Positions 29,569 to 44,066 of a stretch of 64,000 nt of DNA are shown here, in pieces (position 1 is the first letter of the stretch; every line of letters starts with the position of its first letter). The notes below the pieces were generated by a model, which saw only the letters and a program-made list of their open reading frames with translations, made no database searches and was not told the DNA's origin. Origin of the DNA: Entomortierella parvispora E1425 (Eukaryota; Fungi; Mortierellomycota). Made by a program: the position numbers and the translations under genes. The stretch covers positions 1,798,001 to 1,862,000 of the forward strand of contig BQFW01000005.1 in the NCBI GenBank assembly GCA_020891255.1, read 5' to 3'.

Positions 29569-30738
29569 CTAAGGACCTCCGTTGTGGACCAGCTTGTTGG
29601 GGGCGCCTTGAAGATTCCCAATGATCTTGTTGTTGGTGGCCGTGATCGTCAACTTGTCAAAGACCGCTTGCGCCGTGAGAAGAGTGTTGAAGGACAGATA
29701 AAGCGCAGCCACGCCTGCCGCATGAGGGGAAGCCATGGAGGTACCCGTGAGAATGTTTGAGGCCGAGACAGATCCAATCCAGGTGGACGTGATTTCCACA
29801 CCTGGCGCAAAAATCTCGACGCAGGGCCCCAATGCAGTGACGGAGGCGACGTGGTCTGCCTTGTCTGTGGCAGCGACCTTGTAGGTGTTGGGGGAACCTG
29901 AGGGAGAGGTGGAGCATGCCCCCTGGGAGGACCCACCGGCGGCGACGATCAGCGGAATGTTGGCAGCGTACAGGTGATCCGCCGCATTGTCAATCGCCTG
30001 GGATTTCCCCCCACCGAGGGACATGTTCACAACCGCCTTCCCAACGGTCGCATGTTGAATGACCCAGTCCAGACCGGCCAGGATACCTGAGGTGGTTCCA
30101 GCGCCGTTGGCATCTAGGACCTTGACGCCAACAATTTGGACCTTCTTCGCGACTCCGTATTTGGTGCCTCCAATCGTACCAGCCACATGAGTACCGTGGC
30201 CATTCTCGTCCGTGTTGGCGGACCCTGTGACAAAATTGGCGCCGAGGGAAGCGCGACCCCCAAAGTCCGTGTGGGCGGCGGCATAGACACCGGTGTCCAG
30301 GACAAAGGCGGTGACACCTAATCCTGCAGCATCATTGTAAAGGTACGGCTGAGTCCAGTCCAAGTTTGCCTGGGAAAATACGGGTCAGACCCCAAGAGGG
30401 TGGAGACGGCTGAGAACCCAGCGCAGTGAATGTAGCATCTTGCTCGACATAGTGCACCCCAGGGGACGCCAAGATTTCCTTCAACGCAGCGGGGCCAAGC
30501 GTTGCGGCAAACCCAGGGATCTTGCTGTACTTGCGGTGTATGATGGAAGGACGACCGTGGCCATTCTGCTGACGGGTAATGCCATTGAAACGAGTTTGGA
30601 AGGTATCAGCTGAGTGGCCTTTCTTGAGAATGACAACATAAGAGTCAGCAATGGATTCTCCACTGCTGTTGTTGATAAGGGTGGCTGCCTGGACCAAAAC
30701 TACGACAGTAGCAAGGAAAAGAGTTTATAATACTTCAT
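29569..30738 (-). pseudogene. Proteinase K-like subtilisin (S8A) with signal peptide and I9 prodomain; two frameshifts
   Basis: Catalytic motifs VLDTG, NGHGTHVAG and GTSMASPH are present. Frame breaks occur in T-runs at about 30717-30720 (signal peptide) and about 30375-30378 (WGLTRI|SQANL). The oxyanion AAGN is AAGG. Confidence 0.8.
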
Positions 30739-31700
30739 CTTTTTTATCCCCTGAAAGCAGTTTGCTAGTGTTGCGTTGCAATATTGGAGAGTGTTTGTTG
30801 AGGGAAGGGGCATCAGGAAAGAGAAAAAAGAATAAACGGCGATATTCTTGAGCCTCTTATCAACGAGTCTTGTGCGCCACACCAAAGTGCACGGGTAAGG
30901 ATTCAGTACCAGTGGATGGCCTCTCTTGCCTCTTTACAGGATTGGAAACAAGACAACTTGTAAACACTTGATCGAGGCACTTTTGTGCAGGCCTTTCCTC
31001 CGTGCCATCAAATCTTGCATGAGAATGGTGGTAAAAAGAGAAGAACGGCGACGTGAATAAAATTGTAGCGAGTTCTTAAATTGGTCCGAAGAATGAGGAC
31101 GTTTGTCGCATGCCTTTACTCCATGAAATGCATATCAAAAGTCCCTGGCATGAGCCCATGTGTGTGTGTTTGCGCGTTACCAGGGAAAAAGAAGAAAGGC
31201 CCTCCTCAACCTTGTTTCTCTGTGGGCGGCGTGTTTTTTCATCGGTGATGTTGAGCAACCGTTGTCCATCACAATCGCCCCCCCCCTGACTGCCCCTGAC
31301 CGCCCAGAGCAGCCAACCACTTTTGCCGGAACGTTGGAACGTTCGTGTGCTCTTGTCCCTGCCCTCTCTCCTCTTGTCGTCATTCCCACGACAGGCTCGT
31401 TAGCCCTTGAATTTTTTTTTTTTTTTTTTTTTTTTTTGAATCGTTCTCGGGCTGTGAGATGTTTCCGCAGTGGGAACACGTTCATTCTTTGTTGGCCATG
31501 GCTCGGCAATGCAGGACGGCTGTTGTGATTCAGACACAGACAGTGTGGAGTGTATTCGCCCATGAACGCGTCTTTTTTCTTTTGCTTCCATGCATTCTGG
31601 AGGCCACCCCTAGGTCACCAAGGATAGCAGCAACTACATGATCAAGCATCCTTTTGAATTGTAGAATTTGCCCTGGGTTGACCACGAAATTCACACGTTT

Positions 31701-33473
31701 TTAAGTGTTGGCGAGACTGCAACACGCATGCACTTTACTCAACTCATACCTCCAGGGTTGATCTTCAAATGAAAGAACAGAGGCAACATGGTAGTGGCTT
31801 AGCACAAGATGCTGTGTGGCGCCACTGTGGGGTGGATCTTGTGACTGCCAACTAGTTGTGTTTCCCTCCGGGGTCACTGTGGCCGTTGGGCTGGCCGATG
31901 AAGGGAAAGTAGTGGTCGTAGTTGGTTGGGGAGTTGTTTCTGTCTCTACTTGTGTCGCGTACACCTCGCTGGTATCAGCTGTGGTGATGTCTTCACTCAT
32001 CGTAGGGGATGGCGTGTAGAGAGAGCCAGAGGTTTTGAAGGTTGATAGAAATGGAAGTGTTGTTGCCGTAAAGGTCAAGAAAGGGGCGGTTGTAGTGGAA
32101 ATAATTGAGAAGGGGATCGTAGTAGTAGCTGTTTCTTGATGAATGTATGGAGTTTCTGAAGACTGAGACTCGGACATAGACTCTGGGTAAGAGGGAACAG
32201 CGGTGGTTGTTGTTGAGAAAGCTGAGATGGCGGTACTGACTAGATCACTCGTGGTCGAAGAGATTGTGGAGGCGGACAAGGATGTAGTGACTGTAGTAAC
32301 GGAGGAGTTCTGAGTAGTGGTCTTCAAAGTTGCTGAAGGTGATAGAGATGAATTTGAGGGCGAGTCTGGCAACGGCGAGGGTAAGGGAGAACTTGAGGAC
32401 AGCGACGTTCCAACGGAAAACGACTCGAAGTATCTCCTTACTTCTGAAAACCAGCTGATAGGAAAAAGCGATTGTAACCAGAAGAAAAAGGATGACGAGA
32501 ACAACCAAAACCAGTGGATCAACCACGAGGGAGAGAAGGTCAGGCCAAGTTGGAGTAGAAAGAGTGCTAGGAAGGTACCGATGAATGTAAGGGAGGATCG
32601 AAAGTGAGAGGGTGATGATCCAAAGAGCTTTCTTGTATGCAATCGACGCGACACTTGCCAAGATATGAACGAGAGGAATAGAAAGTCGAGCGAGGCGGAG
32701 TACCAACGCAAGGACGGCAGTGAAGAGTCGCCAAGTGGTTCGGATGAGTTGGCCGGTCTTTTGGACAATGAACAATAGGTTGTCGAAGGTGCTTCGTAGA
32801 AGAAGATAGACGAGAGGAAACACGACAAAGATTGGGTGTAGTCGATATAAGAAAAGAAATACAGGGCGTAGAGACTGAGGAACAGGATACATAGGGCAAT
32901 TGCACTCAGGACTACGGTCTTAGCGATGCCACGAACTTGTCGATAACCGTTCACCAGTAGAACAGAGAAAGTCCTAGGACGCGCCCGTTGTAGTTCAGTG
33001 ACCAGATATGAATAACCGTAAAAGAGGAATATCTGGAAGTTCCAGACAAGAGAAATGAAGAGGAAAAAGTGGTACGAAATGGATTGCAGGAAATTGTTGA
33101 ACTTCTGTTTGGTGACACGCCAAAATCGGTAATCTGATGTAGCGTACGAAAGGGCGTATGAGACGAAAGAGGGGACGTGTTGGACGTGGTAAAGAATAAG
33201 GTAGATACGTCTGATCAAAGGTGAAAGGACTCTAACGAGGCGATCGAAAATGATGGTAGCAGAATAGTAGAGACTGAGAGTTATAAGGAGGGCGAGAGAA
33301 AAAAGAAGGACAATGATGAGAAGAGTGCTCATAAGGTACTCCAGATAGGGCAGCTTTTCTCGGATTTTGAAGTTGTACTGAAGCCAGTCAGTGAGGTAGA
33401 AGGTGGTGTCGTTGATGAGTCTTTGAATGAAAGGGATGGCAACGAGGAAACTGCAGAGGATGATAAAACTCAA
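31701..33473 (-). CDS. 3' LTR copy of the membrane/mucin-like leader ORF, reading out into flanking host DNA
   Basis: First 554 aa identical to the polyprotein N-terminus; the last 36 codons come from the junction and sequence outside the LTR (31701-31809). Expression unknown. Confidence 0.5.
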   Translation of the reverse strand: MSFIILCSFLVAIPFIQRLINDTTFYLTDWLQYNFKIREKLPYLEYLMSTLLIIVLLFSLALLITLSLYYSATIIFDRLVRVLSPLIRRIYLILYHVQHVPSFVSYALSYATSDYRFWRVTKQKFNNFLQSISYHFFLFISLVWNFQIFLFYGYSYLVTELQRARPRTFSVLLVNGYRQVRGIAKTVVLSAIALCILFLSLYALYFFSYIDYTQSLSCFLSSIFFYEAPSTTYCSLSKRPANSSEPLGDSSLPSLRWYSASLDFLFLSFISWQVSRRLHTRKLFGSSPSHFRSSLTFIGTFLALFLLQLGLTFSPSWLIHWFWLFSSSFFFWLQSLFPISWFSEVRRYFESFSVGTSLSSSSPLPSPLPDSPSNSSLSPSATLKTTTQNSSVTTVTTSLSASTISSTTSDLVSTAISAFSTTTTAVPSYPESMSESQSSETPYIHQETATTTIPFSIISTTTAPFLTFTATTLPFLSTFKTSGSLYTPSPTMSEDITTADTSEVYATQVETETTPQPTTTTTFPSSASPTATVTPEGNTTSWQSQDPPHSGATQHLVLSHYHVASVLSFEDQPWRYELSKVHACCSLANT

Positions 33474-34104
33474 ACCAATGGTTGCCTCAGGAATTGCGTA
33501 TGGTCCGAGTAAGAAGAAGTAGATAGAGGAAACGGCGAGAGCGACAGCAAAGGTGATGAACGCCCACCTAAATCCCAGGCTATCGAAAGCTCTCTCTTGC
33601 TCCTCGGTGTAAGGACGGGGTAGAGTTGGTGGAATGATGAAAGTTGGTCTGTAGACGAAGAAGTGAAGAAAACAGAGTACGATCGCTTGACAGTGTAAAA
33701 GTAACTGTACTTTGTTGTGGATGTACTCGTGCGTGGTTTTGTGAAGATGAACGGGAAGGGGTGGAGTTCTTGACTTAAAATTTGTAGTACGAAGGTGCTC
33801 GATTTTCTTTATTTTTCTTGTGCTTTTCTTTATATGTGCCTACGAGGTGTGTGTTGATCATTGAAGTGGGGCCTCTAGGCGGCAGTTGTTCCTTGTTTCT
33901 GTCTTTGTTCCATTGTTTCCCTTGTTCTTTGTTTCCAGCTGCTATTCTTGACGCGAGTCCCTTTCCATTTGCTTCAGCCTGTGGGGCGAGTCGATTGCAA
34001 CCTAAATTTGGACACGGCCCGCGTGTGGCAAATCTGGCTTGATCTGTGCTCTGAGTCGGCCGTTGCAGTAGATCAGTGGCACTCACTTCTGTGACGTTGC
34101 GGCT
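31810..34104 (-). repeat. 3' LTR (2295 bp)
   Basis: Copy of 39944-42238; preceded by the PPT plus TGCCC; all ORF-track translations in the two copies are identical. Confidence 0.93.
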
Positions 34105-34109
34105 GGGCA

Positions 34110-34122
34110 TCTTCCCTCCTCT
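34110..34122 (-). other. Polypurine tract
   Basis: AGAGGAGGGAAGA on the minus strand, 5 nt before the 3' LTR repeat boundary. Confidence 0.8.
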
Positions 34123-34184
34123 AGGCCATGTCCTCATGGTCCTAATCTCGTTCGTATGTGCTTTCATGGTCATTATCGTTGCTA

Positions 34185-34246
34185 TTGTCGTTGTTGTCGT
34201 TGTTGTCGTTGTTGTCGTTATTGTCGTTATTGTCGTTATTGTCGTT
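34185..34246. repeat. 9-bp tandem repeat (TTGTCGTTR), about 7 copies, directly after the pol stop codon
   Basis: Read directly: three TTGTCGTTG, three TTGTCGTTA and a partial unit. Confidence 0.9.
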
Positions 34247-37200
34247 TAAATCCTGCTCCGGTTTAGTCCAGACTTGGTCTTCAATCCATGATATCTAAGA
34301 TGACCTCCATCGAAGTGACCTGGACAAAGCTGATCGTCTTTGGAAAGGATAAACTTGCCATGGTCAAGGACCTTCACGATCTTGAACGGTCCGGAATACA
34401 TTTCCTGTGCTGACGAGTGCAAGGTCGCCTTCTTTCCTTTGTTGAAAAGATCAACAAGATCGTCTTCTTGGAACGGGTACTGGCGAGTTTTCTTGCGATT
34501 CATTGAAGTGGCGATCATCGTCCTTCGGTGTGCGTTGACGACGGAGTAGGCGTTTTGACGAACTTTTTCGAAGGTGTTGTACAAGTAAACTGCTCGCTCC
34601 AACGCTTGTTCTTCGATCTCTTCATCCTTAAGTCCTGATTGATCCCAATATTCTTCAAGGAGTCTAAGGTCTCCGGGCATGCGCGGTTGGCGTCCTGTCT
34701 CCAAGTACATCGGTGAGAATCCAGAGAGTCTGTTGGGTAGGGTCCTTAGTACATAGAGGGTGGCATTGAGGAAATGAGGCCAATCCCTTGGGCTCTTGCT
34801 TGCCAGTCGGTTCATGACATTGCGGATTGTTTGGTTGCGGCGTTCAACAATCCCAGATCCTCTTGACACATGGGCTGTCGAAAACTCGAGTTTGATGTTG
34901 TAGTGGGTCAACAAAACGTCGATCGTTTGATTCTTGAATTCTTGTCCTTGATCACAATGAATGGTGATCGGGCAGGAAAAGCGGCAGATCCAATTGAAGA
35001 TGAAGAGCGCAACTTCATCCACTGAGGGTTGCTTGACTGCTTGAGCTTCGACCCAACCGGTAGTCTCGTTTACTCCAACCAGGATCCACTTGTGACCTTC
35101 TTCCGATGGTCCCATGTGCATGTGGTCGAGGAACAGCCTTGCAGTCAAGTCATTCAGCAGGACTAACTCTTGAGCCTTGCGCTTGGGGGGTTCGTTTCCA
35201 TGCTTTTGACATACTGGACAGCTCTTGACCCAATAGGCAACCGTGCCGTAGTATCCAGGCCAGTAGTACTTCTCTCGGATCTTGTTAAACGTGGATGCGA
35301 TACCCGTATGTCCTCCAAGTTCGCTATCATGATATTCCTTTAGGATCCCAGGAACTTCACTTGGGCGAAGGAAGCGTCGAGGATGATCGCTTTCAGAGTC
35401 GGCCCTTTTGTACAAGTCTCCTCCTAGCGCAACGTACTTTCGGTGCCAACTCATGACTTGGTCGGTGGTTACTTTGTTGCTCTGGATAGCCCCTGAAGCT
35501 CCCGGCTGAAGGCATTTCCAAATTGTTGTGTACTTGTTGATGGTGAACGGCAAGAGATCTTCCAGCCCGGTGTTTGGTTGAAGACGGATCATGTCTATCG
35601 GTGCCGACTGGGTCTCTTCCTGATGACCGGGGTAATGTGACAACTCGTGTGCCACCACGTTCTCCTTTCCTTTCATGTAGTGGATTTCGAAAGAGAACTC
35701 GGAGAGTCGCATCATCCAACGAAAGATCTTAGGAGTTGGGTTGGCGAGCTCAGTAAAACCTCGTAGAGCTTGATGGTCGGTTCGAACGGTGAAGTGCTTT
35801 TGAAGCAGGTACGGGCGACAGTATTCGATTGCTTTCACCAAAGCTAGTAACTCTCGTTCGTAAGTGGAGTATCGAACTTCAGGTCCTTTAAGAGCGTAAG
35901 ACCAGAACAGGACTGGGTGAAGATAACCGTCGTGGAGTTGTTGTAATATAGCTCCAAGTGCTTCTTCAGATGCGTCAACGTCCAAGATGTAGTCCTTGTC
36001 TGGGTCTGGATGTATGAGGATTGGTGCGTGGGTAAGAAGTCGTTGTAGCTTTCGTTTTGCCTTCTGGGCCCTTTTTGTCCACTCGAAGGCCTTTTTAGTG
36101 GAGAAGGTCAGGGTGATTGGGCGACTGATCTTTCCAAAGTCCTTGATAAATCGACGGAAGTACTGGGACAGGGCGAAAAATCCTTTCGCTTGTGTCCGAT
36201 TTCTTGGGGTTGGCCATTGTTTGATCTTCTCGATTATTTTTGGATTTGTTTGGATGCCGCCCACACCGACTTGGTGGCCCAGCAACGCAATTGTTTGATA
36301 TCCAAAATGGGTCTTCTTCCTGTTGATCGAGAGGCGGTATTTTCGGATCAAGTCGAGAATCTTACGCAAATGGACCAGGTGGTCCTCGAATTCTTCGGAG
36401 GCGCAAATAGAATCGTCCATATAGATCTGCACAATCTCCGGGATGAGGGGCTCAAAAATGTGGTCCATGACCCTTTGATACCACGCTGGTGAGTTCGTAT
36501 ATCCGAACGGCAGACGAAGGCTCTCAAAAAGTCCATACTCACACACGAAGGCTGACAGTGATGGATTGGCTAATTTAGCGGCCCAGAATCCCTTGTAGAA
36601 GTCAAAAGCCGAGAAGAACCGTTTCTTTCTGAATCTAGACAAGATCGTCTGGATCGAGGGCATGGGGTAGGCGTCCTTGATCACCCTCTTGTTGAGTTCT
36701 TTGTAGTCAATACAGAGACGGAAAAGTCCCTCGTCAAAAATAGACTCCGCAGATGGACTTGGGCCGAACGGGAGGCTGGAAACAAATGGCGAGTCGTCTG
36801 TTTCTTCTTCAATGGGGGCTGGTAAATGGATTTCGACATCCGGGCCTTTTGTTTCGGGCACGGGCAATTTTCTGTTTTGGACCAAAACAATTGGCGATGC
36901 CCACGGACTCTTCGATCGGCGAATGAGCCCATTCTCCATTAGTCGATTCAAATATTCTTTTAGCCATGCGCTGGCTTCTGGAGATAGCTTCCTCGGGGGC
37001 TGTTTGACGGGGCGAGCTCCTGGCATGAGTTGAATTTCGATCGGCTCAATCTTCATGACCCTGATCTGGTCCAGGCGGTCGATGAAGCAGTCGTCATATT
37101 CTTGGAGCAAGCTTTCCAGCCTCTTCTTCTGATCTTCTGGAAGATCCGGGTTGATGTCATACCGACTTGTTGGTTTTGTTGGTTCAAAAGGAACTGCGAC

Positions 37201-40200
37201 CGGTTCTAGACTTCCAATTGAGCGGGTGCCCGTGGTTGAAGTTTTCCCTTTGATCTTGAAGTCTTGAGTTGGTAAATCGTGAGTGGTGAGGACTTCGATC
37301 TCTCCCTCCACGACCTCCGGGTTCGGCATGAACACATGTGTAGGCTCCTCTTTGTCCGAGTGCTCTAGCCTGACTCCTGAGATAGACTGGAGGAGCTGGC
37401 TGGGCACCTTGAATGATTTCTTGTCCTTGTTCGGTGTGATTTTCAGGGCTTCTGATGATCCAACAGCCAAGTGGATTGCTCCAATTGGATTGACATGTGG
37501 TGGGCCCTTCCCTTCTTTACCGGTTTCCATGATAGGAATCTTGACGTTTTCTAATCCTCGGAGTCCGAAGGTCACTTGGTTCAGTTCAGGGTCGTAGTGC
37601 GATAGAGTGCCCTTGATAAAATCCAGTCCAGCGAGGAAAGGCATTTCTTGGCCCGCGATCACCGAAAAATTGAAGGGGATGGTGATGTCCGGAGTCACGC
37701 CTAGTTCGATGAGAGTCGAGCCAATGGTTCGTTCTTGAATTCCGTTGGGGTACTTCAGAGTTCTCTTATATCTGGGGTCTAGTGTCAACCCTAGGGCTTT
37801 GGCCATTTTTTCCGAGATCGTTGAGACTCGTGCTCCGTTATCGAGTTGGATGTCTACAACTTCGTTTCCAACGATGACTGGGAAGAAGACAAGGCGAAGG
37901 TCCTCTGGAACGTCTAGAGGCATAACTCGCTTGGGCTTCGTAATGGCCTTCGGGGCAGCCGGCGAGGGGTCTTCGTCGTCTTCGTCGTCTGAGTCATCTG
38001 AATCGTCGCTAGAATCATCTGAATCGTCTTGTATGTCTTGTTGATGGACCAAAGATGCGGATTTAGGCATGCCTACCATCTCAAGAATCTTCTTTCGAAA
38101 CGAGAGATCTTTCTGCAGGAGATAGGGGAGTGGTGTTGGAATTGCCATCTTCATCATGGAGTCCAAAGGGTCGCCGCCTTCTGGGTTGCCTTGGAGGTAA
38201 TGATCGTATATCGGCAAATGAACGTCAGGTCCTGCTTTCAGAAAAGCTTTCTCTTGTCTTGCGTCCTCTTTTCTCCTCTTCTTTGCGGCTTTGGCTTTGT
38301 CGAGGGCTTTGAGCTTGTTGTCATAGATTTCGACTTCTCTCGCAGACATCTGTGATCGGTCCTTACGAGGATGGATGTGCTCAAGGGCGGGGCCTGCCTC
38401 TGCTCCTTGAGGTTCTTGACTCGTTGAAGGACTTGTTACTTGTTCAGGCAGTGGATCGGGCTGAACTGACAAGTCTTGATCTTCTTGGGTTCTGCGATCA
38501 TTCGAGGAAGAGCCTTGGTCGATCTGCTCTTGTTCCTCTGGCTGCTCAAATTGGACTTGTTTGCCTTTGTTTTTTTTTCTTGTGCCGACCGCTTGGATCT
38601 TCATGAGTTCTTCGTCACACTCCACGGCCGGTGTTTCTTCTCCAAAAAGGAAGTTTGGAATACCAATGTCGGGAATGGCGTCATCCATGACCTTTATACT
38701 CCCTATTCGACTCGATGATCCGGCTGTGGCGTTAGAACTGGAGGCCCCAGCACCAGCGCGGCCGGAGAGGGGGTTTTCCCATGGTAGGTCCTTCGAACGG
38801 GAAGCCTTCCACTTTTCGATTCGGATTGGACAGTCAGCGTACTTGTGTGAGCTCCCAGATCCAGGGGGGCAAAATCGACAAGCATAGTTACATCGGTGGC
38901 TGACATGGTTGGTAAGACCGCAGTTGTCACACTCTGTTCGCGGAGCAACGGGAGTGGTATTCGCACCTGTGGCCGGGGTGTTTGATGGAGTTCGGGGAGG
39001 TGCCCTTGGTACTTGTGGAGTGTTTTGGTTTCTGAAGTTTGAGGGAAAAGGTGCAAGAGGTTCTCCTTTCTTCATTCTTCTAGCCATGATCTTGTTCTGC
39101 TGGAAATTGGTTTGCGAGAGGGCCTCTTGCAAAGTCTTGGCCATCGAAAGGTTCATCACAGTCTTAAGCTCGTTGTCTTGAAGCCCATCAATCAAGGTTT
39201 GGATGTACTGTTGTGCCGGGTAGATTTGATGAGGATCGATCCTCTGGACTAGATCGTAGACTCGCTCTCCATACTCAACGACTGACTCATCGTCTTTCTG
39301 GTGCACTTGCTGCAATTGCTGGTGCAGAGAGGCCTTATAATCGTCGCCGTTGAATCGACCGCGGAAAAGAACCACGAAAGAGTTTCCTTCATTTTCTTCT
39401 TCGTTGTAGGAGCTTACGGTCCCGACGGGAGCATCGATACGGGACATCCAAGCGGCAGCTGGACCATCGAGAGCGGTGGGAATTGCTCGAAGCAACTCTT
39501 CGTCTGTCAGGTTGTAGTACCTCTTGATGCTGTCAATTGTTCTTAGAAAGGCCTCAGGGTCTTCGGAAATTCGGCCCGCGAATTTGGGTAGGACATCTGG
39601 TCGGAACTTCTTGATCTTTACCACGTTGCTGGCTGGGGGTGCCTGCTTGTGTTCTTGGCCTCGAGCTGCTTTTGATGGCTCCTCAAGCTGCTTGATTCTC
39701 AATCCAGGTTTCGCTTGCTTGGTTTTCTTGCTCTCATCCTCGTGATACAATTCATTCAGATAGAGATGAAATGATCGCAAAGTATGAAATATGGTAACGC
39801 CGAGGAATGCAATGACCATAAGAACGAGGAAACCCACAATGATGTGTGAAGCCATGTTAAAAAAATAGGCAGCTGCGGCGGCAATGCCGGTTCTGATTTC
39901 GGGCGGTATCTGGCCCCACAGTGCCCAGGTTCTCCACCAAAACTGCTGTGTGGCGCCACTGTGGGGTGGATCTTGTGACTGCCAACTAGTTGTGTTTCCC
40001 TCCGGGGTCACTGTGGCCGTTGGGCTGGCCGATGAAGGGAAAGTAGTGGTCGTAGTTGGTTGGGGAGTTGTTTCTGTCTCTACTTGTGTCGCGTACACCT
40101 CGCTGGTATCAGCTGTGGTGATGTCTTCACTCATCGTAGGGGATGGCGTGTAGAGAGAGCCAGAGGTTTTGAAGGTTGATAGAAATGGAAGTGTTGTTGC

Positions 40201-41607
40201 CGTAAAGGTCAAGAAAGGGGCGGTTGTAGTGGAAATAATTGAGAAGGGGATCGTAGTAGTAGCTGTTTCTTGATGAATGTATGGAGTTTCTGAAGACTGA
40301 GACTCGGACATAGACTCTGGGTAAGAGGGAACAGCGGTGGTTGTTGTTGAGAAAGCTGAGATGGCGGTACTGACTAGATCACTCGTGGTCGAAGAGATTG
40401 TGGAGGCGGACAAGGATGTAGTGACTGTAGTAACGGAGGAGTTCTGAGTAGTGGTCTTCAAAGTTGCTGAAGGTGATAGAGATGAATTTGAGGGCGAGTC
40501 TGGCAACGGCGAGGGTAAGGGAGAACTTGAGGACAGCGACGTTCCAACGGAAAACGACTCGAAGTATCTCCTTACTTCTGAAAACCAGCTGATAGGAAAA
40601 AGCGATTGTAACCAGAAGAAAAAGGATGACGAGAACAACCAAAACCAGTGGATCAACCACGAGGGAGAGAAGGTCAGGCCAAGTTGGAGTAGAAAGAGTG
40701 CTAGGAAGGTACCGATGAATGTAAGGGAGGATCGAAAGTGAGAGGGTGATGATCCAAAGAGCTTTCTTGTATGCAATCGACGCGACACTTGCCAAGATAT
40801 GAACGAGAGGAATAGAAAGTCGAGCGAGGCGGAGTACCAACGCAAGGACGGCAGTGAAGAGTCGCCAAGTGGTTCGGATGAGTTGGCCGGTCTTTTGGAC
40901 AATGAACAATAGGTTGTCGAAGGTGCTTCGTAGAAGAAGATAGACGAGAGGAAACACGACAAAGATTGGGTGTAGTCGATATAAGAAAAGAAATACAGGG
41001 CGTAGAGACTGAGGAACAGGATACATAGGGCAATTGCACTCAGGACTACGGTCTTAGCGATGCCACGAACTTGTCGATAACCGTTCACCAGTAGAACAGA
41101 GAAAGTCCTAGGACGCGCCCGTTGTAGTTCAGTGACCAGATATGAATAACCGTAAAAGAGGAATATCTGGAAGTTCCAGACAAGAGAAATGAAGAGGAAA
41201 AAGTGGTACGAAATGGATTGCAGGAAATTGTTGAACTTCTGTTTGGTGACACGCCAAAATCGGTAATCTGATGTAGCGTACGAAAGGGCGTATGAGACGA
41301 AAGAGGGGACGTGTTGGACGTGGTAAAGAATAAGGTAGATACGTCTGATCAAAGGTGAAAGGACTCTAACGAGGCGATCGAAAATGATGGTAGCAGAATA
41401 GTAGAGACTGAGAGTTATAAGGAGGGCGAGAGAAAAAAGAAGGACAATGATGAGAAGAGTGCTCATAAGGTACTCCAGATAGGGCAGCTTTTCTCGGATT
41501 TTGAAGTTGTACTGAAGCCAGTCAGTGAGGTAGAAGGTGGTGTCGTTGATGAGTCTTTGAATGAAAGGGATGGCAACGAGGAAACTGCAGAGGATGATAA
41601 AACTCAA
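34246..41607 (-). CDS. Single-frame polyprotein: membrane/mucin-like leader-Gag-aspartic protease-RT-RNase H-integrase
   Basis: Capsid-like LPKFAG..EDPEAFL and Q..DESVVEY; CX2CX4HX4C knuckle; LDNGA; RLCIDYKELN, LPFGYTNSP, YMDD; DASEEALGA, ERELLA, RTDH; integrase HX6H/CX2C, DQG and VERRN, and GPF. Called start is TTG; first ATG at 41466; the frame is open from 41973. Confidence 0.95.
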   Translation of the reverse strand: MSFIILCSFLVAIPFIQRLINDTTFYLTDWLQYNFKIREKLPYLEYLMSTLLIIVLLFSLALLITLSLYYSATIIFDRLVRVLSPLIRRIYLILYHVQHVPSFVSYALSYATSDYRFWRVTKQKFNNFLQSISYHFFLFISLVWNFQIFLFYGYSYLVTELQRARPRTFSVLLVNGYRQVRGIAKTVVLSAIALCILFLSLYALYFFSYIDYTQSLSCFLSSIFFYEAPSTTYCSLSKRPANSSEPLGDSSLPSLRWYSASLDFLFLSFISWQVSRRLHTRKLFGSSPSHFRSSLTFIGTFLALFLLQLGLTFSPSWLIHWFWLFSSSFFFWLQSLFPISWFSEVRRYFESFSVGTSLSSSSPLPSPLPDSPSNSSLSPSATLKTTTQNSSVTTVTTSLSASTISSTTSDLVSTAISAFSTTTTAVPSYPESMSESQSSETPYIHQETATTTIPFSIISTTTAPFLTFTATTLPFLSTFKTSGSLYTPSPTMSEDITTADTSEVYATQVETETTPQPTTTTTFPSSASPTATVTPEGNTTSWQSQDPPHSGATQQFWWRTWALWGQIPPEIRTGIAAAAAYFFNMASHIIVGFLVLMVIAFLGVTIFHTLRSFHLYLNELYHEDESKKTKQAKPGLRIKQLEEPSKAARGQEHKQAPPASNVVKIKKFRPDVLPKFAGRISEDPEAFLRTIDSIKRYYNLTDEELLRAIPTALDGPAAAWMSRIDAPVGTVSSYNEEENEGNSFVVLFRGRFNGDDYKASLHQQLQQVHQKDDESVVEYGERVYDLVQRIDPHQIYPAQQYIQTLIDGLQDNELKTVMNLSMAKTLQEALSQTNFQQNKIMARRMKKGEPLAPFPSNFRNQNTPQVPRAPPRTPSNTPATGANTTPVAPRTECDNCGLTNHVSHRCNYACRFCPPGSGSSHKYADCPIRIEKWKASRSKDLPWENPLSGRAGAGASSSNATAGSSSRIGSIKVMDDAIPDIGIPNFLFGEETPAVECDEELMKIQAVGTRKKNKGKQVQFEQPEEQEQIDQGSSSNDRRTQEDQDLSVQPDPLPEQVTSPSTSQEPQGAEAGPALEHIHPRKDRSQMSAREVEIYDNKLKALDKAKAAKKRRKEDARQEKAFLKAGPDVHLPIYDHYLQGNPEGGDPLDSMMKMAIPTPLPYLLQKDLSFRKKILEMVGMPKSASLVHQQDIQDDSDDSSDDSDDSDDEDDEDPSPAAPKAITKPKRVMPLDVPEDLRLVFFPVIVGNEVVDIQLDNGARVSTISEKMAKALGLTLDPRYKRTLKYPNGIQERTIGSTLIELGVTPDITIPFNFSVIAGQEMPFLAGLDFIKGTLSHYDPELNQVTFGLRGLENVKIPIMETGKEGKGPPHVNPIGAIHLAVGSSEALKITPNKDKKSFKVPSQLLQSISGVRLEHSDKEEPTHVFMPNPEVVEGEIEVLTTHDLPTQDFKIKGKTSTTGTRSIGSLEPVAVPFEPTKPTSRYDINPDLPEDQKKRLESLLQEYDDCFIDRLDQIRVMKIEPIEIQLMPGARPVKQPPRKLSPEASAWLKEYLNRLMENGLIRRSKSPWASPIVLVQNRKLPVPETKGPDVEIHLPAPIEEETDDSPFVSSLPFGPSPSAESIFDEGLFRLCIDYKELNKRVIKDAYPMPSIQTILSRFRKKRFFSAFDFYKGFWAAKLANPSLSAFVCEYGLFESLRLPFGYTNSPAWYQRVMDHIFEPLIPEIVQIYMDDSICASEEFEDHLVHLRKILDLIRKYRLSINRKKTHFGYQTIALLGHQVGVGGIQTNPKIIEKIKQWPTPRNRTQAKGFFALSQYFRRFIKDFGKISRPITLTFSTKKAFEWTKRAQKAKRKLQRLLTHAPILIHPDPDKDYILDVDASEEALGAILQQLHDGYLHPVLFWSYALKGPEVRYSTYERELLALVKAIEYCRPYLLQKHFTVRTDHQALRGFTELANPTPKIFRWMMRLSEFSFEIHYMKGKENVVAHELSHYPGHQEETQSAPIDMIRLQPNTGLEDLLPFTINKYTTIWKCLQPGASGAIQSNKVTTDQVMSWHRKYVALGGDLYKRADSESDHPRRFLRPSEVPGILKEYHDSELGGHTGIASTFNKIREKYYWPGYYGTVAYWVKSCPVCQKHGNEPPKRKAQELVLLNDLTARLFLDHMHMGPSEEGHKWILVGVNETTGWVEAQAVKQPSVDEVALFIFNWICRFSCPITIHCDQGQEFKNQTIDVLLTHYNIKLEFSTAHVSRGSGIVERRNQTIRNVMNRLASKSPRDWPHFLNATLYVLRTLPNRLSGFSPMYLETGRQPRMPGDLRLLEEYWDQSGLKDEEIEEQALERAVYLYNTFEKVRQNAYSVVNAHRRTMIATSMNRKKTRQYPFQEDDLVDLFNKGKKATLHSSAQEMYSGPFKIVKVLDHGKFILSKDDQLCPGHFDGGHLRYHGLKTKSGLNRSRI
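39922..39939 (-). other. Primer-binding site, probably tRNA-Ala
   Basis: TGGTGGAGAACCTGGGCA, 4 nt inside the 5' LTR, is complementary to a tRNA 3' end ...GTTCTCC-A-CCA. U at position 70 and A73 fit the tRNA-Ala G3:U70 identity element (inference). Confidence 0.8.
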
Positions 41608-42238
41608 ACCAATGGTTGCCTCAGGAATTGCGTATGGTCCGAGTAAGAAGAAGTAGATAGAGGAAACGGCGAGAGCGACAGCAAAGGTGATGAACGCCCA
41701 CCTAAATCCCAGGCTATCGAAAGCTCTCTCTTGCTCCTCGGTGTAAGGACGGGGTAGAGTTGGTGGAATGATGAAAGTTGGTCTGTAGACGAAGAAGTGA
41801 AGAAAACAGAGTACGATCGCTTGACAGTGTAAAAGTAACTGTACTTTGTTGTGGATGTACTCGTGCGTGGTTTTGTGAAGATGAACGGGAAGGGGTGGAG
41901 TTCTTGACTTAAAATTTGTAGTACGAAGGTGCTCGATTTTCTTTATTTTTCTTGTGCTTTTCTTTATATGTGCCTACGAGGTGTGTGTTGATCATTGAAG
42001 TGGGGCCTCTAGGCGGCAGTTGTTCCTTGTTTCTGTCTTTGTTCCATTGTTTCCCTTGTTCTTTGTTTCCAGCTGCTATTCTTGACGCGAGTCCCTTTCC
42101 ATTTGCTTCAGCCTGTGGGGCGAGTCGATTGCAACCTAAATTTGGACACGGCCCGCGTGTGGCAAATCTGGCTTGATCTGTGCTCTGAGTCGGCCGTTGC
42201 AGTAGATCAGTGGCACTCACTTCTGTGACGTTGCGGCT
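39944..42238 (-). repeat. 5' LTR (2295 bp)
   Basis: Boundaries are where the two copies diverge; minus-strand ends AGCC...AGCA; followed after 4 nt by the PBS. Confidence 0.93.
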
Positions 42239-42467
42239 AAGAATTCTCGTAGTCCAAACCTGGCAGTTGGTTGGAATTGACATGCATGCAGCATGCATGC
42301 ATGTGCCTGACAATGGACAGTGGACAATGTAAAGTTGCAAGCCTCTATGCATGCCGTTAATTGACCTCTGCACATCCCACGCATTATCTTCATGTTTCAT
42401 ATTCCCCGCCTGTGCTTCTTTCAGAGCTATTCACTGAGAGGTTTTATTGAACAAAAGGGGCTCTTTT

Positions 42468-43349
42468 TTACAGCTGGTCAATGTCTACCTCGACACCGTC
42501 CCTGGGCGAGTCTCTTGACAATACGCGATGCGAGCTCGTGGAGATCCAGGTCAGATCATTGCCCTCCAGCGTCTCAACACGGACGCTAACAGAGTAGGTT
42601 CTAAAGTCCTCGATGACACTTGGGTCATACATGACTTTGAACTCGATGGGCAACTCCAGCCCTTCTTCGCCAGTCTCGATCCACTGTTCTCCCATCACTA
42701 CAGCGGCAACGTCCATCAAAGACGTATCCGACAATTGGACCTTCACCATGCTCTTGGGTCCAATCTTGGCTCCAGCCTCGGCCTTGCCTCTGACAATTCG
42801 ACCAGTGAGAGCCGACGTTCTGGTCTCTTCGGTTCCTGTGGGCACGGGGTTCTCTTCGGGAGCGTAGACACGCTCGAGTTGAATCTCGACATTATCACTG
42901 GGGTGGCCATTGGTCAAAACAGGGTACCGTGTGGTGGTGATCCAAGTCAACTCTTCTTCTGCTGAGGCGTGGTCAGGGATTTCGACGACTCGAGCAGAGA
43001 CAGAAAGGGACTGGTGCGAGTTCTTGCGGACCTTGCTGGCATCATAGGGGATCTTGAAGGCAATAGGGAAATCGAGGGTCTGACGGGCCCCAGTGACAAT
43101 GACTTGTTCGCCCAGAGTGATCGAAGGCGCGTCCATGAGCGAGACGTCCAAAAGCTGGATGGTCAAACGGGAGTTGGACCCTATTCTTGGGTATTCGATG
43201 GAGCGGCCAGGGCCAGGGAAGATCTTGCCAGTGATAAAGTGGCTATGGCTGTGGTGATGATGGTTGGTCATGATGGATTGAGCAGAGGTGTAGAGGACAA
43301 AGAAGGTGAAGGTGAAGAGTGAAAAGAGAGAGGAAAAGCGGTTCGGCAT
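42468..43349 (-). CDS. Intronless protein with two tandem YbaY/YscW-like lipoprotein domains; probable signal peptide
   Basis: Two repeats of L.V.L.D.SL.D....(L/M)GEQ.I......FP..F...YD.S.....Y/SLSV..R......L.WI.T....VL, the bacterial YbaY pattern. ATG 43349 gives MPNRFSSLFSLFTFTFFVLYTSA; alternative ATGs at 43544 and MTNHHHH. Confidence 0.8.
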   Translation of the reverse strand: MPNRFSSLFSLFTFTFFVLYTSAQSIMTNHHHHSHSHFITGKIFPGPGRSIEYPRIGSNSRLTIQLLDVSLMDAPSITLGEQVIVTGARQTLDFPIAFKIPYDASKVRKNSHQSLSVSARVVEIPDHASAEEELTWITTTRYPVLTNGHPSDNVEIQLERVYAPEENPVPTGTEETRTSALTGRIVRGKAEAGAKIGPKSMVKVQLSDTSLMDVAAVVMGEQWIETGEEGLELPIEFKVMYDPSVIEDFRTYSVSVRVETLEGNDLTWISTSSHRVLSRDSPRDGVEVDIDQL

Positions 43350-44066
43350 TGGTTCGAGATCTGTGTTTTTATGGTGAATGAGAGGGACAAAGAGAAGAGT
43401 TGATGTTGGGCGTCGGGCAACGAAGCGAGATAAAAATAAAGGGCGCGAGAAGACGGCAGCTGTTCCACTCGCACTGGCAGAGAAGATGACGATCAAGACC
43501 CAACTCAGCAGAGACACCCAGTTCAGAGCCGAGGAAAGGACCATTCTTAATCCACAGGCTACGACCGGTCTCTACCAGGCAAGCGGCGGGACGTGCACCA
43601 TCCTTCTTCCGGCCACCCCTGGGACATGCGGGGAAGAGCGTTGCGGTGCACTGTTGCGCCCGCCCGGGTGAAGACGGTGCTTACCTTATGATGATTCCTT
43701 TTCTGTTGTCCTTCTTGTTCCCATGAGAAGTGCACGTGCACCATAGGGAGTGCATAGTTGACAATACAGAGGGCGGCGAAGTCCGTTTTGTGCTTGCAGA
43801 GGGTGGCACGGCGGTCTTTCTTTTTCTCTCTCGGTTTTGTCTTTCTCGGACATCATGCATGGAAAGGGTCCACGCTTGTTTCTCCACTTTTCTCTTTCTC
43901 TCTTCACTCTTCACTCTTCAGTCTTAACTCTTCTCTCTCTCTTCACTCTTCTCTCTTCTGTCTCTCACGCTCCACTACTTTCTACTCTCCGCTCTCCACT
44001 CATTCTTGTTGAATACCCCCCTCCACACCTTTTGTGAATGCACCATCACCAACTCTCTGAATTGCA

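Follow-up and report, generated by a model that had tools for sequence, protein, structure and literature searches.

A Ty3/gypsy-type element in Entomortierella parvispora

The window, a 64-kb stretch of the genome of the soil fungus Entomortierella parvispora, carries on its minus strand an LTR retrotransposon of 10,429 bp (31810-42238), the features of which are collected in Table 1. Its two LTRs are 100% identical over 2,295 bp and a 4-bp target duplication (TCTT) flanks the element on each side. Gag-Pol is encoded in a single ORF that is free of stops and frameshifts, and in which Pfam searches placed the domains in the order Gag-PR-RT-RNaseH-IN that is also found in Ty3/gypsy elements, and the pol stop codon is only 141 nt away from the 3' LTR. 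For the capsid region, a sequence search against the PDB returned Arc matches at E 0.4-0.8 at best, and an AF2 model of aa 700-1010 was confident for a transmembrane (TM) helix only, the capsid region being of low confidence. The window contains no tRNA gene to which the candidate primer-binding site (PBS) could be compared, this candidate PBS is not common to the elements L002-L005 discussed below, and an Rfam search of the element matched no family. LTRs of Ty3/gypsy elements have the termini 5'-TG...CA-3', whereas those found here are AG...CA, a small departure that leaves the other Ty3/gypsy criteria unaffected. Taken together, this is a complete Ty3/gypsy-type LTR retrotransposon that is apparently young and intact. 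The source assembly was obtained from Nanopore reads and was Pilon-polished with high-coverage Illumina reads, and polishing may account for part of the perfect LTR identity.

Table 1. Features of the retrotransposon and of its open reading frame (coordinates refer to the window; aa numbering starts at the first codon of the open frame)
Feature	Coordinates	Strand	Details
Whole element	31810..42238	-	5' LTR, internal region (34105-39943) and 3' LTR
5' LTR	39944..42238	-	2,295 bp; termini AG...CA
3' LTR	31810..34104	-	2,295 bp
Target-site duplication, upstream copy	42239..42242	-	TCTT on the element strand, read directly
Target-site duplication, downstream copy	31806..31809	-	TCTT, read directly
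Putative U3, ~265 nt	41974..42238	-	placed from signal positions; no codon periodicity
Leader, codons 1-676 of the open frame (the part inside the LTR)	39946..41973	-	0 stops
TATAAAG	41962..41968	-	directly past the last in-frame stop
AATAAA	41942..41947	-	sole canonical poly(A) signal in the LTR
AUG codon 170	41464..41466	-	first AUG after the TATA box; weak context, C at -3
Hydrophobic, all-helical leader domain (predicted), aa 170-470	40564..41466	-	hydropathy, AF2 model
Ser/Thr/Pro-rich mucin-like stretch, aa 471-676	39946..40563	-	strong codon periodicity, Gag-Pol-like third-base usage
Primer-binding site candidate	39922..39939	-	inside the ORF; 18-mer starting with TGG, 4 nt past the LTR end
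AUG codon 707	39853..39855	-	just past the PBS; strong context, A at -3, G at +4
Predicted TM helix, aa 711-729	39787..39843	-	N-terminus of the M707 product
Gag capsid domain PF03732	39178..39483	-	aa 831-932; 32.6 bits (cut-off 24.1)
Aspartic protease	37612..37896	-	aa 1360-1454; Pfam matches under curated cut-offs
Reverse transcriptase PF00078	36268..36729	-	aa 1749-1902
RNase H PF17917/PF17919	35695..36081	-	aa 1965-2093
Integrase, zinc-binding and core, PF17921 and PF00665	34873..35361	-	aa 2205-2367
Polypurine tract, 13 nt	34110..34122	-	5 nt upstream of the 3' LTR, read directly

The open reading frame within the LTR is non-random

The initial annotation had reported a stop-free frame of 2575 codons from position 41973, and this is confirmed: the minus-strand frame from 41973 to 34249 comprises 2,575 sense codons, is closed by a stop codon at 34246-34248, and has 676 codons inside the 5' LTR (here called the leader), with 0 stops. 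As had also been claimed, the frame continues through the LTR end and the PBS, a stretch that translates as QFWWRTWA, into Gag-Pol. The LTR part is devoid of stops, compared to 19 and 13 stops in the remaining two sense frames. When this part was shuffled, the number of stops averaged 24.9 for mononucleotide shuffles (minimum 11; n = 2,000) and 21.0 for dinucleotide shuffles (minimum 9; n = 1,000). Three-base periodicity was detected in all three sub-regions of the leader (P 0.002, 0.012 and 3e-16) and was absent from U3 and from two intergenic controls (P 0.37-0.46). Also, the third-base usage at four-fold sites in the Ser/Thr region (A.31, C.29, G.14, T.25) agrees with that of Gag-Pol (A.30, C.30, G.17, T.22), and does so in the leader frame only. 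A tandem repeat was looked for in the leader and none was found, which rules out repeats as the source of the open frame.

Two technical origins of the frame were considered, namely that a pyrimidine-rich strand had given a long frame by chance or that polishing errors had made or joined frames. The leader strand indeed is 58-73% pyrimidine over most of its length, its second frame holds a 215-codon ORF that arose by chance, and the assembly is Nanopore-based. However, none of the 3,000 shuffles came near 0 stops, the other sense frames are interrupted many times, the periodicity is significant, and both LTR copies agree in an assembly that was Illumina-polished at high coverage. A chance opening due to pyrimidine richness was rejected on the shuffle results, and an artefact of either kind is scarcely credible. 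Clearly, the reading frame within the LTR is real and non-random.

Inside the LTR the leader frame is not closed by a stop of its own, and in the 3' LTR it extends 36 codons into the flanking DNA before a stop is reached (listed ORF 31701-33473). Both features fit an ORF built for continuing into gag.

Transcription signals and start codons

Within the LTR, the leader frame is closed nowhere except in the putative U3, and it opens right at the TATAAAG/AATAAA pair, ~270 nt into the LTR. The positions of the TATA box and of AATAAA would imply a short R and a U5 of ~2 kb, and a frame opening at these signals would place the leader in R/U5, so that the genomic RNA would have one copy of it, at the 5' end. 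The earlier description of this ORF as LTR-borne is correct in that the ORF lies inside the LTR; since the frame starts precisely at the TATA box and the poly(A) signal, expanded coding U5 is the better name. An accessory gene of the Sag/Nef type encoded in U3 was ruled out, as the frame is not open in the initial ~265 nt of the LTR. A 2-kb U5 would need an unusually long strong-stop DNA, which counts against the interpretation favoured below.

The 554 LTR residues initially attributed to the called ORF had been counted from a TTG at 41607 according to a bacterial start rule. The first AUG is codon 170 (41466), from which a product of 2,406 aa would be made, with 507 residues within the LTR. 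In-frame AUGs of the leader are codons 170, 555 and 614, and codon 707 occupies the position of a conventional Gag-Pol start after the PBS, with a predicted product of 1,869 aa. Codons 170 and 555 have weak AUG contexts, whereas that of codon 707 is strong. M170 and M707 each directly precede about 19-20 hydrophobic residues, and the 19-residue stretch following codon 170 is signal-anchor-like. From the TATA box to codon 170 there are 502 nt without an ATG in any frame (5.7 expected, P 0.0035), and the whole LTR past the TATA box has 4 ATGs, 3 of them in frame, as compared to 11.8 ± 3.0 in dinucleotide shuffles. The weak upstream contexts and the scarcity of AUGs, together with the strong context of M707, suggest that Gag-Pol may start mainly at M707, the long form being made in minor amounts. 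Codons 1-169 are open and periodic though they lie upstream of the first AUG; this is unexplained by the favoured interpretation and counts against it.

The public AUGUSTUS model P0001 starts at codon 614, which lies in the LTR, and reads across the PBS, in support of the interpretation favoured below; that it is not extended to codon 170, and that nothing was called in the 3' LTR, count against it. The predicted RNA structure of the leader (-14.1 kcal/mol per 100 nt) is lower than that of gag-pol (-22.3 kcal/mol per 100 nt; P 2e-8). Such a less structured, AUG-poor sequence might mainly be a long 5' RNA, with Gag-Pol made essentially from codon 707 only and with a functionless leader peptide, the frame being open so that stray initiation gives Gag-Pol and not an inhibitory uORF. 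Besides the low structure, this alternative is favoured by the number of AUGs (4 instead of about 12, one only out of frame), by the distribution of weak and strong contexts, by a gene caller that passed over most of the leader, and by the low-complexity, orphan character of the peptide described below. It would be simpler, though, to lose a few AUGs than to hold 676 codons free of stops, constraint at the level of translation is indicated by the codon periodicity and by a synonymous usage like that of Gag-Pol, and the product from M170 opens with a signal-anchor-like stretch. We consider this 5' RNA alternative possible, but on balance doubtful.

Predicted properties of the leader protein

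The hydrophobic segments, the Ser/Thr/Pro-rich stretch, the sequons and the extra TM helix ahead of the capsid that the initial annotation had listed are all present. Strong hydropathy peaks are located at aa 172-190, 308-326 and 417-435, in addition to weaker ones. The composition of aa 471-676 amounts to 24.6% T, 21.7% S and 10.1% P, and the sequons of the leader are NSS (three times), NTT and NDT. The TM helix HIIVGFLVLMVIAFLGVTIF has a Kyte-Doolittle value of 2.99 and was modelled by AF2 as a helix with a pLDDT of 89-96. For aa 1-470, the single-sequence AF2 model is all-helical with low confidence (pLDDT 55), and the structure search suggested earlier, performed as a Foldseek search of this model against the PDB, gave no credible match (best E 0.72, TM-score <=0.16). 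The leader sequence is low-complexity and composition-driven, on a pyrimidine-rich strand, and T-rich codons yield hydrophobic residues by default; these points speak against the interpretation favoured below.

An Env-like or glycoprotein function, as proposed at first, received no support from Pfam, from a PDB sequence search or from Foldseek with the low-confidence AF2 model. In position the leader does not resemble an Env or fusion glycoprotein of LTR elements, and neither a fusion-protein family (Pfam) nor such a fold (Foldseek, pLDDT 55 model) was found.

Searches for homologues and related elements

When the leader was compared by HMMER to a library of 1.84 billion representative proteins, the annotation of the E. 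parvispora genome itself included, nothing was recovered but the genome's own model P0001, and a word-indexed search of 5.8 billion proteins again returned P0001 alone. No match was obtained in JGI metagenomes or in a sequence search of the PDB, and no family in Pfam. Gag had no match in metagenomes, IMG/VR or GTDB genomes, and pol had none in IMG/VR. Protein searches with Gag-Pol and with RT-IN yielded sequences of only about 25-40% identity, mostly animal or metagenomic; L004 and L005, which are among the better matches, are ordinary elements with gag and pol split and without a leader. The collection of related elements that had been advised thus remained without a close relative in protein, metagenome, IMG/VR and GTDB searches, in which neither a second copy of the element nor a solo LTR was found.

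LTR retrotransposons are able to carry foreign sequence, and the leader could be a recently captured passenger in U5, a fragment of a cellular or foreign membrane or mucin-like gene that is open because it is young and in frame by a one-in-three chance. The identical LTRs, which suggest a young copy, and a leader composition sharply unlike that of gag-pol would suit such an origin. No donor gene was present among the representative proteins, own annotation included, or in the metagenomes, however. A count of 3 Met in 676 residues, with a single out-of-frame ATG, is not what an ordinary captured gene would show and suggests adaptation to being scanned as a leader. Furthermore, the third-base usage agrees with that of the element and the leader lacks its own stop, and a passenger origin is very unlikely.

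Comparison with known systems

With the Ty3/gypsy elements (Metaviridae) the element shares the LTR pair, the target-site duplication, the polypurine tract, a PBS candidate and a single Gag-Pol with PR-RT-RNaseH-IN. It differs from them in that its LTRs are 2.3 kb long with ~2 kb of each open and in frame with gag, in that the PBS lies deep inside the ORF, in that TM helices are predicted ahead of Gag, and in its 5' terminus. Its pol is only about 30-40% identical to the closest proteins in the databases.

In Ty1 (Pseudoviridae), the PBS is situated within the GAG ORF (PMC4974528). In both Ty1 and the element described here the ORF starts upstream of the PBS, which is read in the gag frame; the two elements are alike in layout but not by descent, and by analogy Ty1 is a precedent at small scale for a PBS inside the gag frame. 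Only few codons precede the PBS of Ty1, in contrast to 507-676 codons here, and Ty1 belongs to another lineage, has another domain order and has no membrane segments.

Gammaretroviral glyco-Gag is an N-terminally extended, membrane-inserted Gag that is made from an upstream in-frame start. Here the likeness is one of idea only, an upstream in-frame start that would add a signal-anchor leader and give two Gag isoforms per RNA, whereas the leader found here exceeds that of glyco-Gag by far in length, is predicted to have several helices and is located upstream of the PBS within the LTR. Among retroviral proteins the leader had no named match (Pfam, PDB sequence search, Foldseek, protein libraries).

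Betaretrovirus Sag and other accessory ORFs of the 3' LTR resemble the leader as membrane-protein ORFs that are physically within an LTR. ORFs of the Sag type occupy U3 of the 3' LTR, end at a stop codon of their own and use separate mRNAs for their expression. By contrast, the ORF reported here begins past the TATA box (R/U5) and runs on into gag without its own stop codon, and no homology was found. The env-like ORFs of errantiviruses, Athila/Tat and similar elements likewise encode a hydrophobic, glycoprotein-like product in a Ty3/gypsy element, as is predicted here. However, env-like genes are separate ORFs 3' of pol, whereas the leader precedes gag, to which it is fused in frame.

Hydrophobic N-terminal segments ahead of Gag-Pol are also present in two distant gypsy-like polyproteins, P0006 (L003) and P0027 (L002). 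P0006 has ~1,700 residues ahead of RT, like the E. parvispora element, and its ORF covers a self-closing contig except for 183 nt, so that the LTR of P0006 must overlap coding sequence. In contrast, the pol regions of P0006 and P0027 are only ~28% identical to that of the E. parvispora element, and their leaders, which showed no sequence similarity to the leader of the latter, contain ATGs in normal numbers and begin at an ordinary first ATG.

The initial annotation had not recognised this architecture in fungal retrotransposons, and in line with this the layout was not returned by protein, metagenome or literature searches; in the literature, no precedent was found for an LTR-encoded or TM-anchored Gag. 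As read from the sequence, the layout, in which an LTR-borne leader passes through the PBS into Gag-Pol, is unusual.

Discussion

The interpretation that we favour, and to which we give about an even chance of being correct, is that U5 has expanded to ~2 kb and has become coding, and that nested membrane-anchored Gag-Pol isoforms are produced by leaky scanning. Transcription would start just past the TATA box, ~270 nt into the LTR, and the genomic RNA would carry the whole open frame once, at its 5' end, with the PBS ~500 codons in. Scanning ribosomes would reach the weak AUG at codon 170, then a few other weak AUGs and then the strong AUG at codon 707 after the PBS. In the long isoform, Gag-Pol would be preceded by a hydrophobic domain of several helices and by a Ser/Thr/Pro-rich linker, and the short isoform from codon 707, which is probably more abundant, would have a single N-terminal TM anchor. 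Both isoforms may tether Gag-Pol to an internal membrane, where particle assembly would take place. A more far-reaching version, which seems quite unlikely to us, would see a hitherto undescribed strategy here, with U5 turned into a gene for a glycosylated multi-pass membrane leader in Gag-Pol that serves assembly on a membrane and perhaps provides an env-free route between hyphal compartments or cells, and the TM segments of P0006 and P0027 would then be instances of an overlooked recurrent solution.

LTRs are usually regarded as control regions that do not code for protein, with U5 as the shortest part. In standard annotation, LTRs are masked or gene models begin at internal AUGs, and leaders of this kind would therefore be missed. 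If a U5 of ~2 kb is translated as a membrane domain on Gag-Pol, the known coding layouts of LTR retroelements would be enlarged, and a PBS could sit hundreds of codons inside an ORF. The E. parvispora element would then be a fungal case of a membrane-tethered Gag that is independent of env, and this would bear on how retroviruses acquired membrane association.

Anatomy of the element and its surroundings

Structural features and protein domains of the element (window positions; aa counted from codon 1 at 41973)
Feature	Position	Strand	Remarks
Direct repeats (LTRs)	31810-34104 and 39944-42238	minus	2,295 bp each, 100% identical
Target-site flanks	both sides of element	minus	TCTT
Purine tract	5 nt upstream of 3' LTR	minus	13 nt
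18-mer opening with TGG (PBS candidate)	4 nt past 5' LTR	minus	
Stop-free frame	41973 to 34249	minus	2,575 codons
Retrotransposon Gag domain	aa 831-932		Pfam
Protease	aa 1360-1454		Pfam
RT	aa 1749-1902		Pfam
RNase H	aa 1965-2093		Pfam
Integrase	aa 2205-2367		Pfam

The domains follow one another in the Ty3/gypsy order, and no stops or frameshifts were found in the Gag-Pol reading frame over 2,575 codons. By the criteria tested the element is Ty3/gypsy, save for the 5' TG terminus, which it lacks; its PBS is a candidate. On the element strand the LTR termini (42238, 31810) read AG...CA instead of the usual TG...CA, and no terminal inverted repeat was found between the first and last ten LTR bases. 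The copy looks intact and, judged from its identical LTRs, young, with the caveat that Pilon polishing of a repeat could inflate LTR identity. The assembly (GCA_020891255.1; contig BQFW01000005.1) is a Nanopore genome of the soil fungus E. parvispora E1425 (Mortierellomycota), polished with Nanopolish and Pilon and annotated using AUGUSTUS with RNA-seq hints (PMC8759367).

Directly past the pol stop codon and before the PPT, a 9-nt unit is repeated about seven times with 96% matches (34183-34246). An ATG-initiated ORF of 132 codons (33775-34173, minus strand) begins just past the same stop, spans the PPT and the entire putative U3 of the 3' LTR, and ends just beyond TATA/AATAAA. Its frame is likewise open in the 5' LTR copy (ORF 41909-42400) and a Pfam search with it gave no match; it could be due to chance or constitute a small accessory ORF at the RNA 3' end.

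According to annotation and Pfam, the genes in the neighbourhood are ordinary eukaryotic ones, for example for a UFD1-like protein and a Peptidase_S8. This Peptidase_S8 (subtilase) gene (about 29569-31789, minus strand) has its annotated start codon 21 nt downstream of the 3' LTR end on the same strand, so that the element occupies the subtilase promoter or 5' UTR. The LTR frame and the subtilase gene are in different reading frames; a promoter in the 3' LTR, about 2 kb upstream, could give rise to read-out transcripts. The gene adjoining the 5' LTR (42468-43544, minus strand) encodes a clear PF09619 YscW domain (E 2.7e-27), the domain of a lipoprotein chaperone in bacterial type III secretion. 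Since the host fungus is a natural carrier of Mycoavidus endobacteria, this gene may be bacterial-derived.

The LTR contains a real open reading frame

The strand is rich in pyrimidines (58-73% across most of the leader, that is, codons 1-676 at 39946-41973), a composition which leads to fewer stops and to translations rich in Leu, Phe, Ser, Pro and Thr in any frame, and the open frame was therefore tested carefully. None of the 676 LTR codons is a stop, compared to 19 and 13 stops in the other two sense frames. Mononucleotide shuffling of the leader gave a mean of 24.9 stops (minimum 11; 2,000 shuffles) and dinucleotide-preserving shuffling 21.0 (minimum 9; 1,000 shuffles). Codons 1-169, 170-470 and 471-676 each lack stops, versus 3-10 in the other frames, and each shows base-by-codon-position periodicity (P 0.002, 0.012 and 3e-16, respectively), which was not significant in U3 and two intergenic controls (P 0.37-0.46). 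In this frame only, third bases at four-fold sites of the Ser/Thr-rich part are nearly identical to Gag-Pol usage, and no tandem repeats were found in the leader. Given these stop statistics, the periodicity, the Gag-Pol-like third bases and the lack of tandem repeats, the leader open frame is a real, codon-structured feature. Chance or an assembly artefact is very unlikely as its origin, and the single stop-free frame of 2,575 codons running through the LTR into Gag-Pol, reported in the initial annotation, is confirmed by the frame count and the shuffles.

A second-frame ORF of 215 codons (40379-41026, minus strand), starting at the LTR's only out-of-frame ATG, is compatible with chance given such a composition; it had no Pfam match.

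Position of the leader within the LTR

Stops occur in the leader frame only within the first ~265 nt of the LTR. Directly after the last in-frame stop there is a TATAAAG (41968-41962), followed 21 nt further on by the LTR's sole AATAAA (41947-41942), a layout to be expected where U3 meets a short R. We therefore infer a U3 of about 270-300 nt and a U5 of about 2 kb, which would hold the entire leader. On this reading, the genomic RNA would carry a single leader, at its 5' end, and what makes this leader LTR-borne is solely the position of the PBS far downstream, within the ORF. Near the LTR start, in the putative U3 (41974-42238, minus strand), a splice-donor-like hexamer occurs, and at the very start of the open frame there is a pyrimidine-rich stretch that ends in AG.

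Within the LTR the leader is not closed by any stop, and in the 3' LTR its frame continues for 36 codons into flanking DNA, which argues for an ORF built to enter gag and not for a free-standing LTR gene. A Sag/Nef-type U3 accessory gene was discarded, as stops close the frame in U3 and none terminates the leader within the LTR.

Start codons and scanning

The 502 nt following the TATA box are devoid of ATG in any frame (5.7 expected, P 0.0035), and the first ATG is codon 170 (41466; M170), in frame and in weak context. Past the TATA box the LTR has only four ATGs, of which codons 170, 555 and 614 are in frame and the fourth is not; dinucleotide shuffles of this region contain 11.8 ± 3.0. ATG density amounts to 2 per kb in the leader versus 14 per kb in gag-pol. 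Codon 707 (39855; M707), 85 nt past the LTR end and 64 nt past the PBS, stands out with the strongest context, having A at -3 and G at +4. Predicted RNA folding of -14.1 kcal/mol per 100 nt for the leader and -22.3 for gag-pol (P 2e-8) suggests that the leader is much less structured. The leader thus looks shaped for ribosome scanning, and AUG scarcity, start contexts and weak RNA structure fit leaky scanning, which would generate two isoforms, 2,406 aa long when started at M170 and 1,869 aa long when started at M707. That a coding U5 yields such nested, membrane-anchored Gag-Pol isoforms is our preferred explanation, to which we assign about an even chance. In the main rival reading, which is less likely, the leader would chiefly be an unstructured, AUG-poor leader RNA, its open frame a fail-safe and its peptide without a function of its own.

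The initial annotation had placed 554 residues of the called ORF in the LTR; the frame is indeed LTR-borne, but the count begins at a TTG, a start codon under bacterial ORF rules alone. The public AUGUSTUS protein of this locus (P0001; 1,962 aa) likewise begins inside the LTR, at codon 614, and crosses the PBS. Codons 1-169 (41467-41973) contain neither a stop nor an ATG; the two alternative frames have 3 and 5 stops there. This open, periodic stretch upstream of the first AUG is accounted for by none of the readings offered; it would be explained by initiation at a non-AUG codon or by the recent loss of a start.

The predicted leader protein

Hydropathy and composition recovered everything described for this protein before: hydrophobic segments, a Ser/Thr/Pro-rich stretch, sequons, a PBS translated as QFWWRTWA and a further TM helix before Gag. 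M170 is directly followed by 19 hydrophobic residues; other strong hydropathy peaks cover aa 308-326 and 417-435. Weaker peaks occur in between, and three additional hydrophobic segments lie upstream of M170, within codons 1-169. Residues 471-676 comprise 24.6% Thr, 21.7% Ser and 10.1% Pro, and N-X-S/T sequons number five over the whole leader. Past QFWWRTWA and M707, aa 711-729 form a predicted helix of very high hydrophobicity (Kyte-Doolittle 2.99; AF2 pLDDT 89-96), followed by basic residues and Gag. If this helix anchors the protein with Gag in the cytosol, the Ser/Thr-rich stretch would be luminal or extracellular and open to glycosylation.

The AF2 single-sequence model of aa 1-470 is all-helical with low confidence (pLDDT 55, pTM 0.38), and Foldseek of this model (pLDDT 55) against PDB yielded no match of any credibility (best E 0.72). 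The env-like identity considered earlier was not borne out, position and fold both ruling out an env-type gene.

Relatives and known systems

The model from its own genome was the leader's only match among 1.84 billion representative proteins and also among 5.8 billion clustered proteins; JGI metagenomes, Pfam and PDB sequences provided none. A recently captured passenger is improbable, given that no donor gene was found, that methionine codons are almost missing from the leader and that its codon usage resembles that of the element. The element's Gag had no match in metagenomes, IMG/VR or GTDB genomes, nor its pol in IMG/VR. No close relative of the element was found in the collections searched (metagenomes, IMG/VR, GTDB genomes, protein libraries), and RT-IN identity to the best protein matches is 25-40%.

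Two distant gypsy-like polyproteins carry N-terminal membrane segments. P0027 (1,878 aa; metagenome contig L002, 1-7567, JGI 3300078829) has two TM helices in aa 18-62. P0006 (2,836 aa; contig L003, 1-8749, GCA_040384225.1, JAWVHC010012382.1) begins with a signal-like sequence and has several TM segments across ~700 residues N-terminal to Gag-Pol; its RT lies at aa 1707, a position close to that in the E. parvispora element (aa 1749). L003 is self-closing (55-nt overlap; unit of 8,694 nt) and the P0006 ORF takes up 8,511 nt of the unit, leaving 183 nt, so that its LTR must overlap coding sequence. Neither leader shares sequence with that of E. parvispora, and both have normal ATG content.

In Ty1 the PBS is inside the GAG ORF (PMC4974528), a small-scale precedent for the E. 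parvispora element. The leader most resembles a glyco-Gag-like N-terminal extension of Gag, with the PBS placed inside the ORF as in Ty1, although it is much larger than, and without homology to, either. Overall, the initial observation is confirmed and its interpretation partly supported. No description of such a layout was found in the open-access text searched. P0006 and P0027 give a hint that membrane-anchored Gag-Pol may be recurrent.
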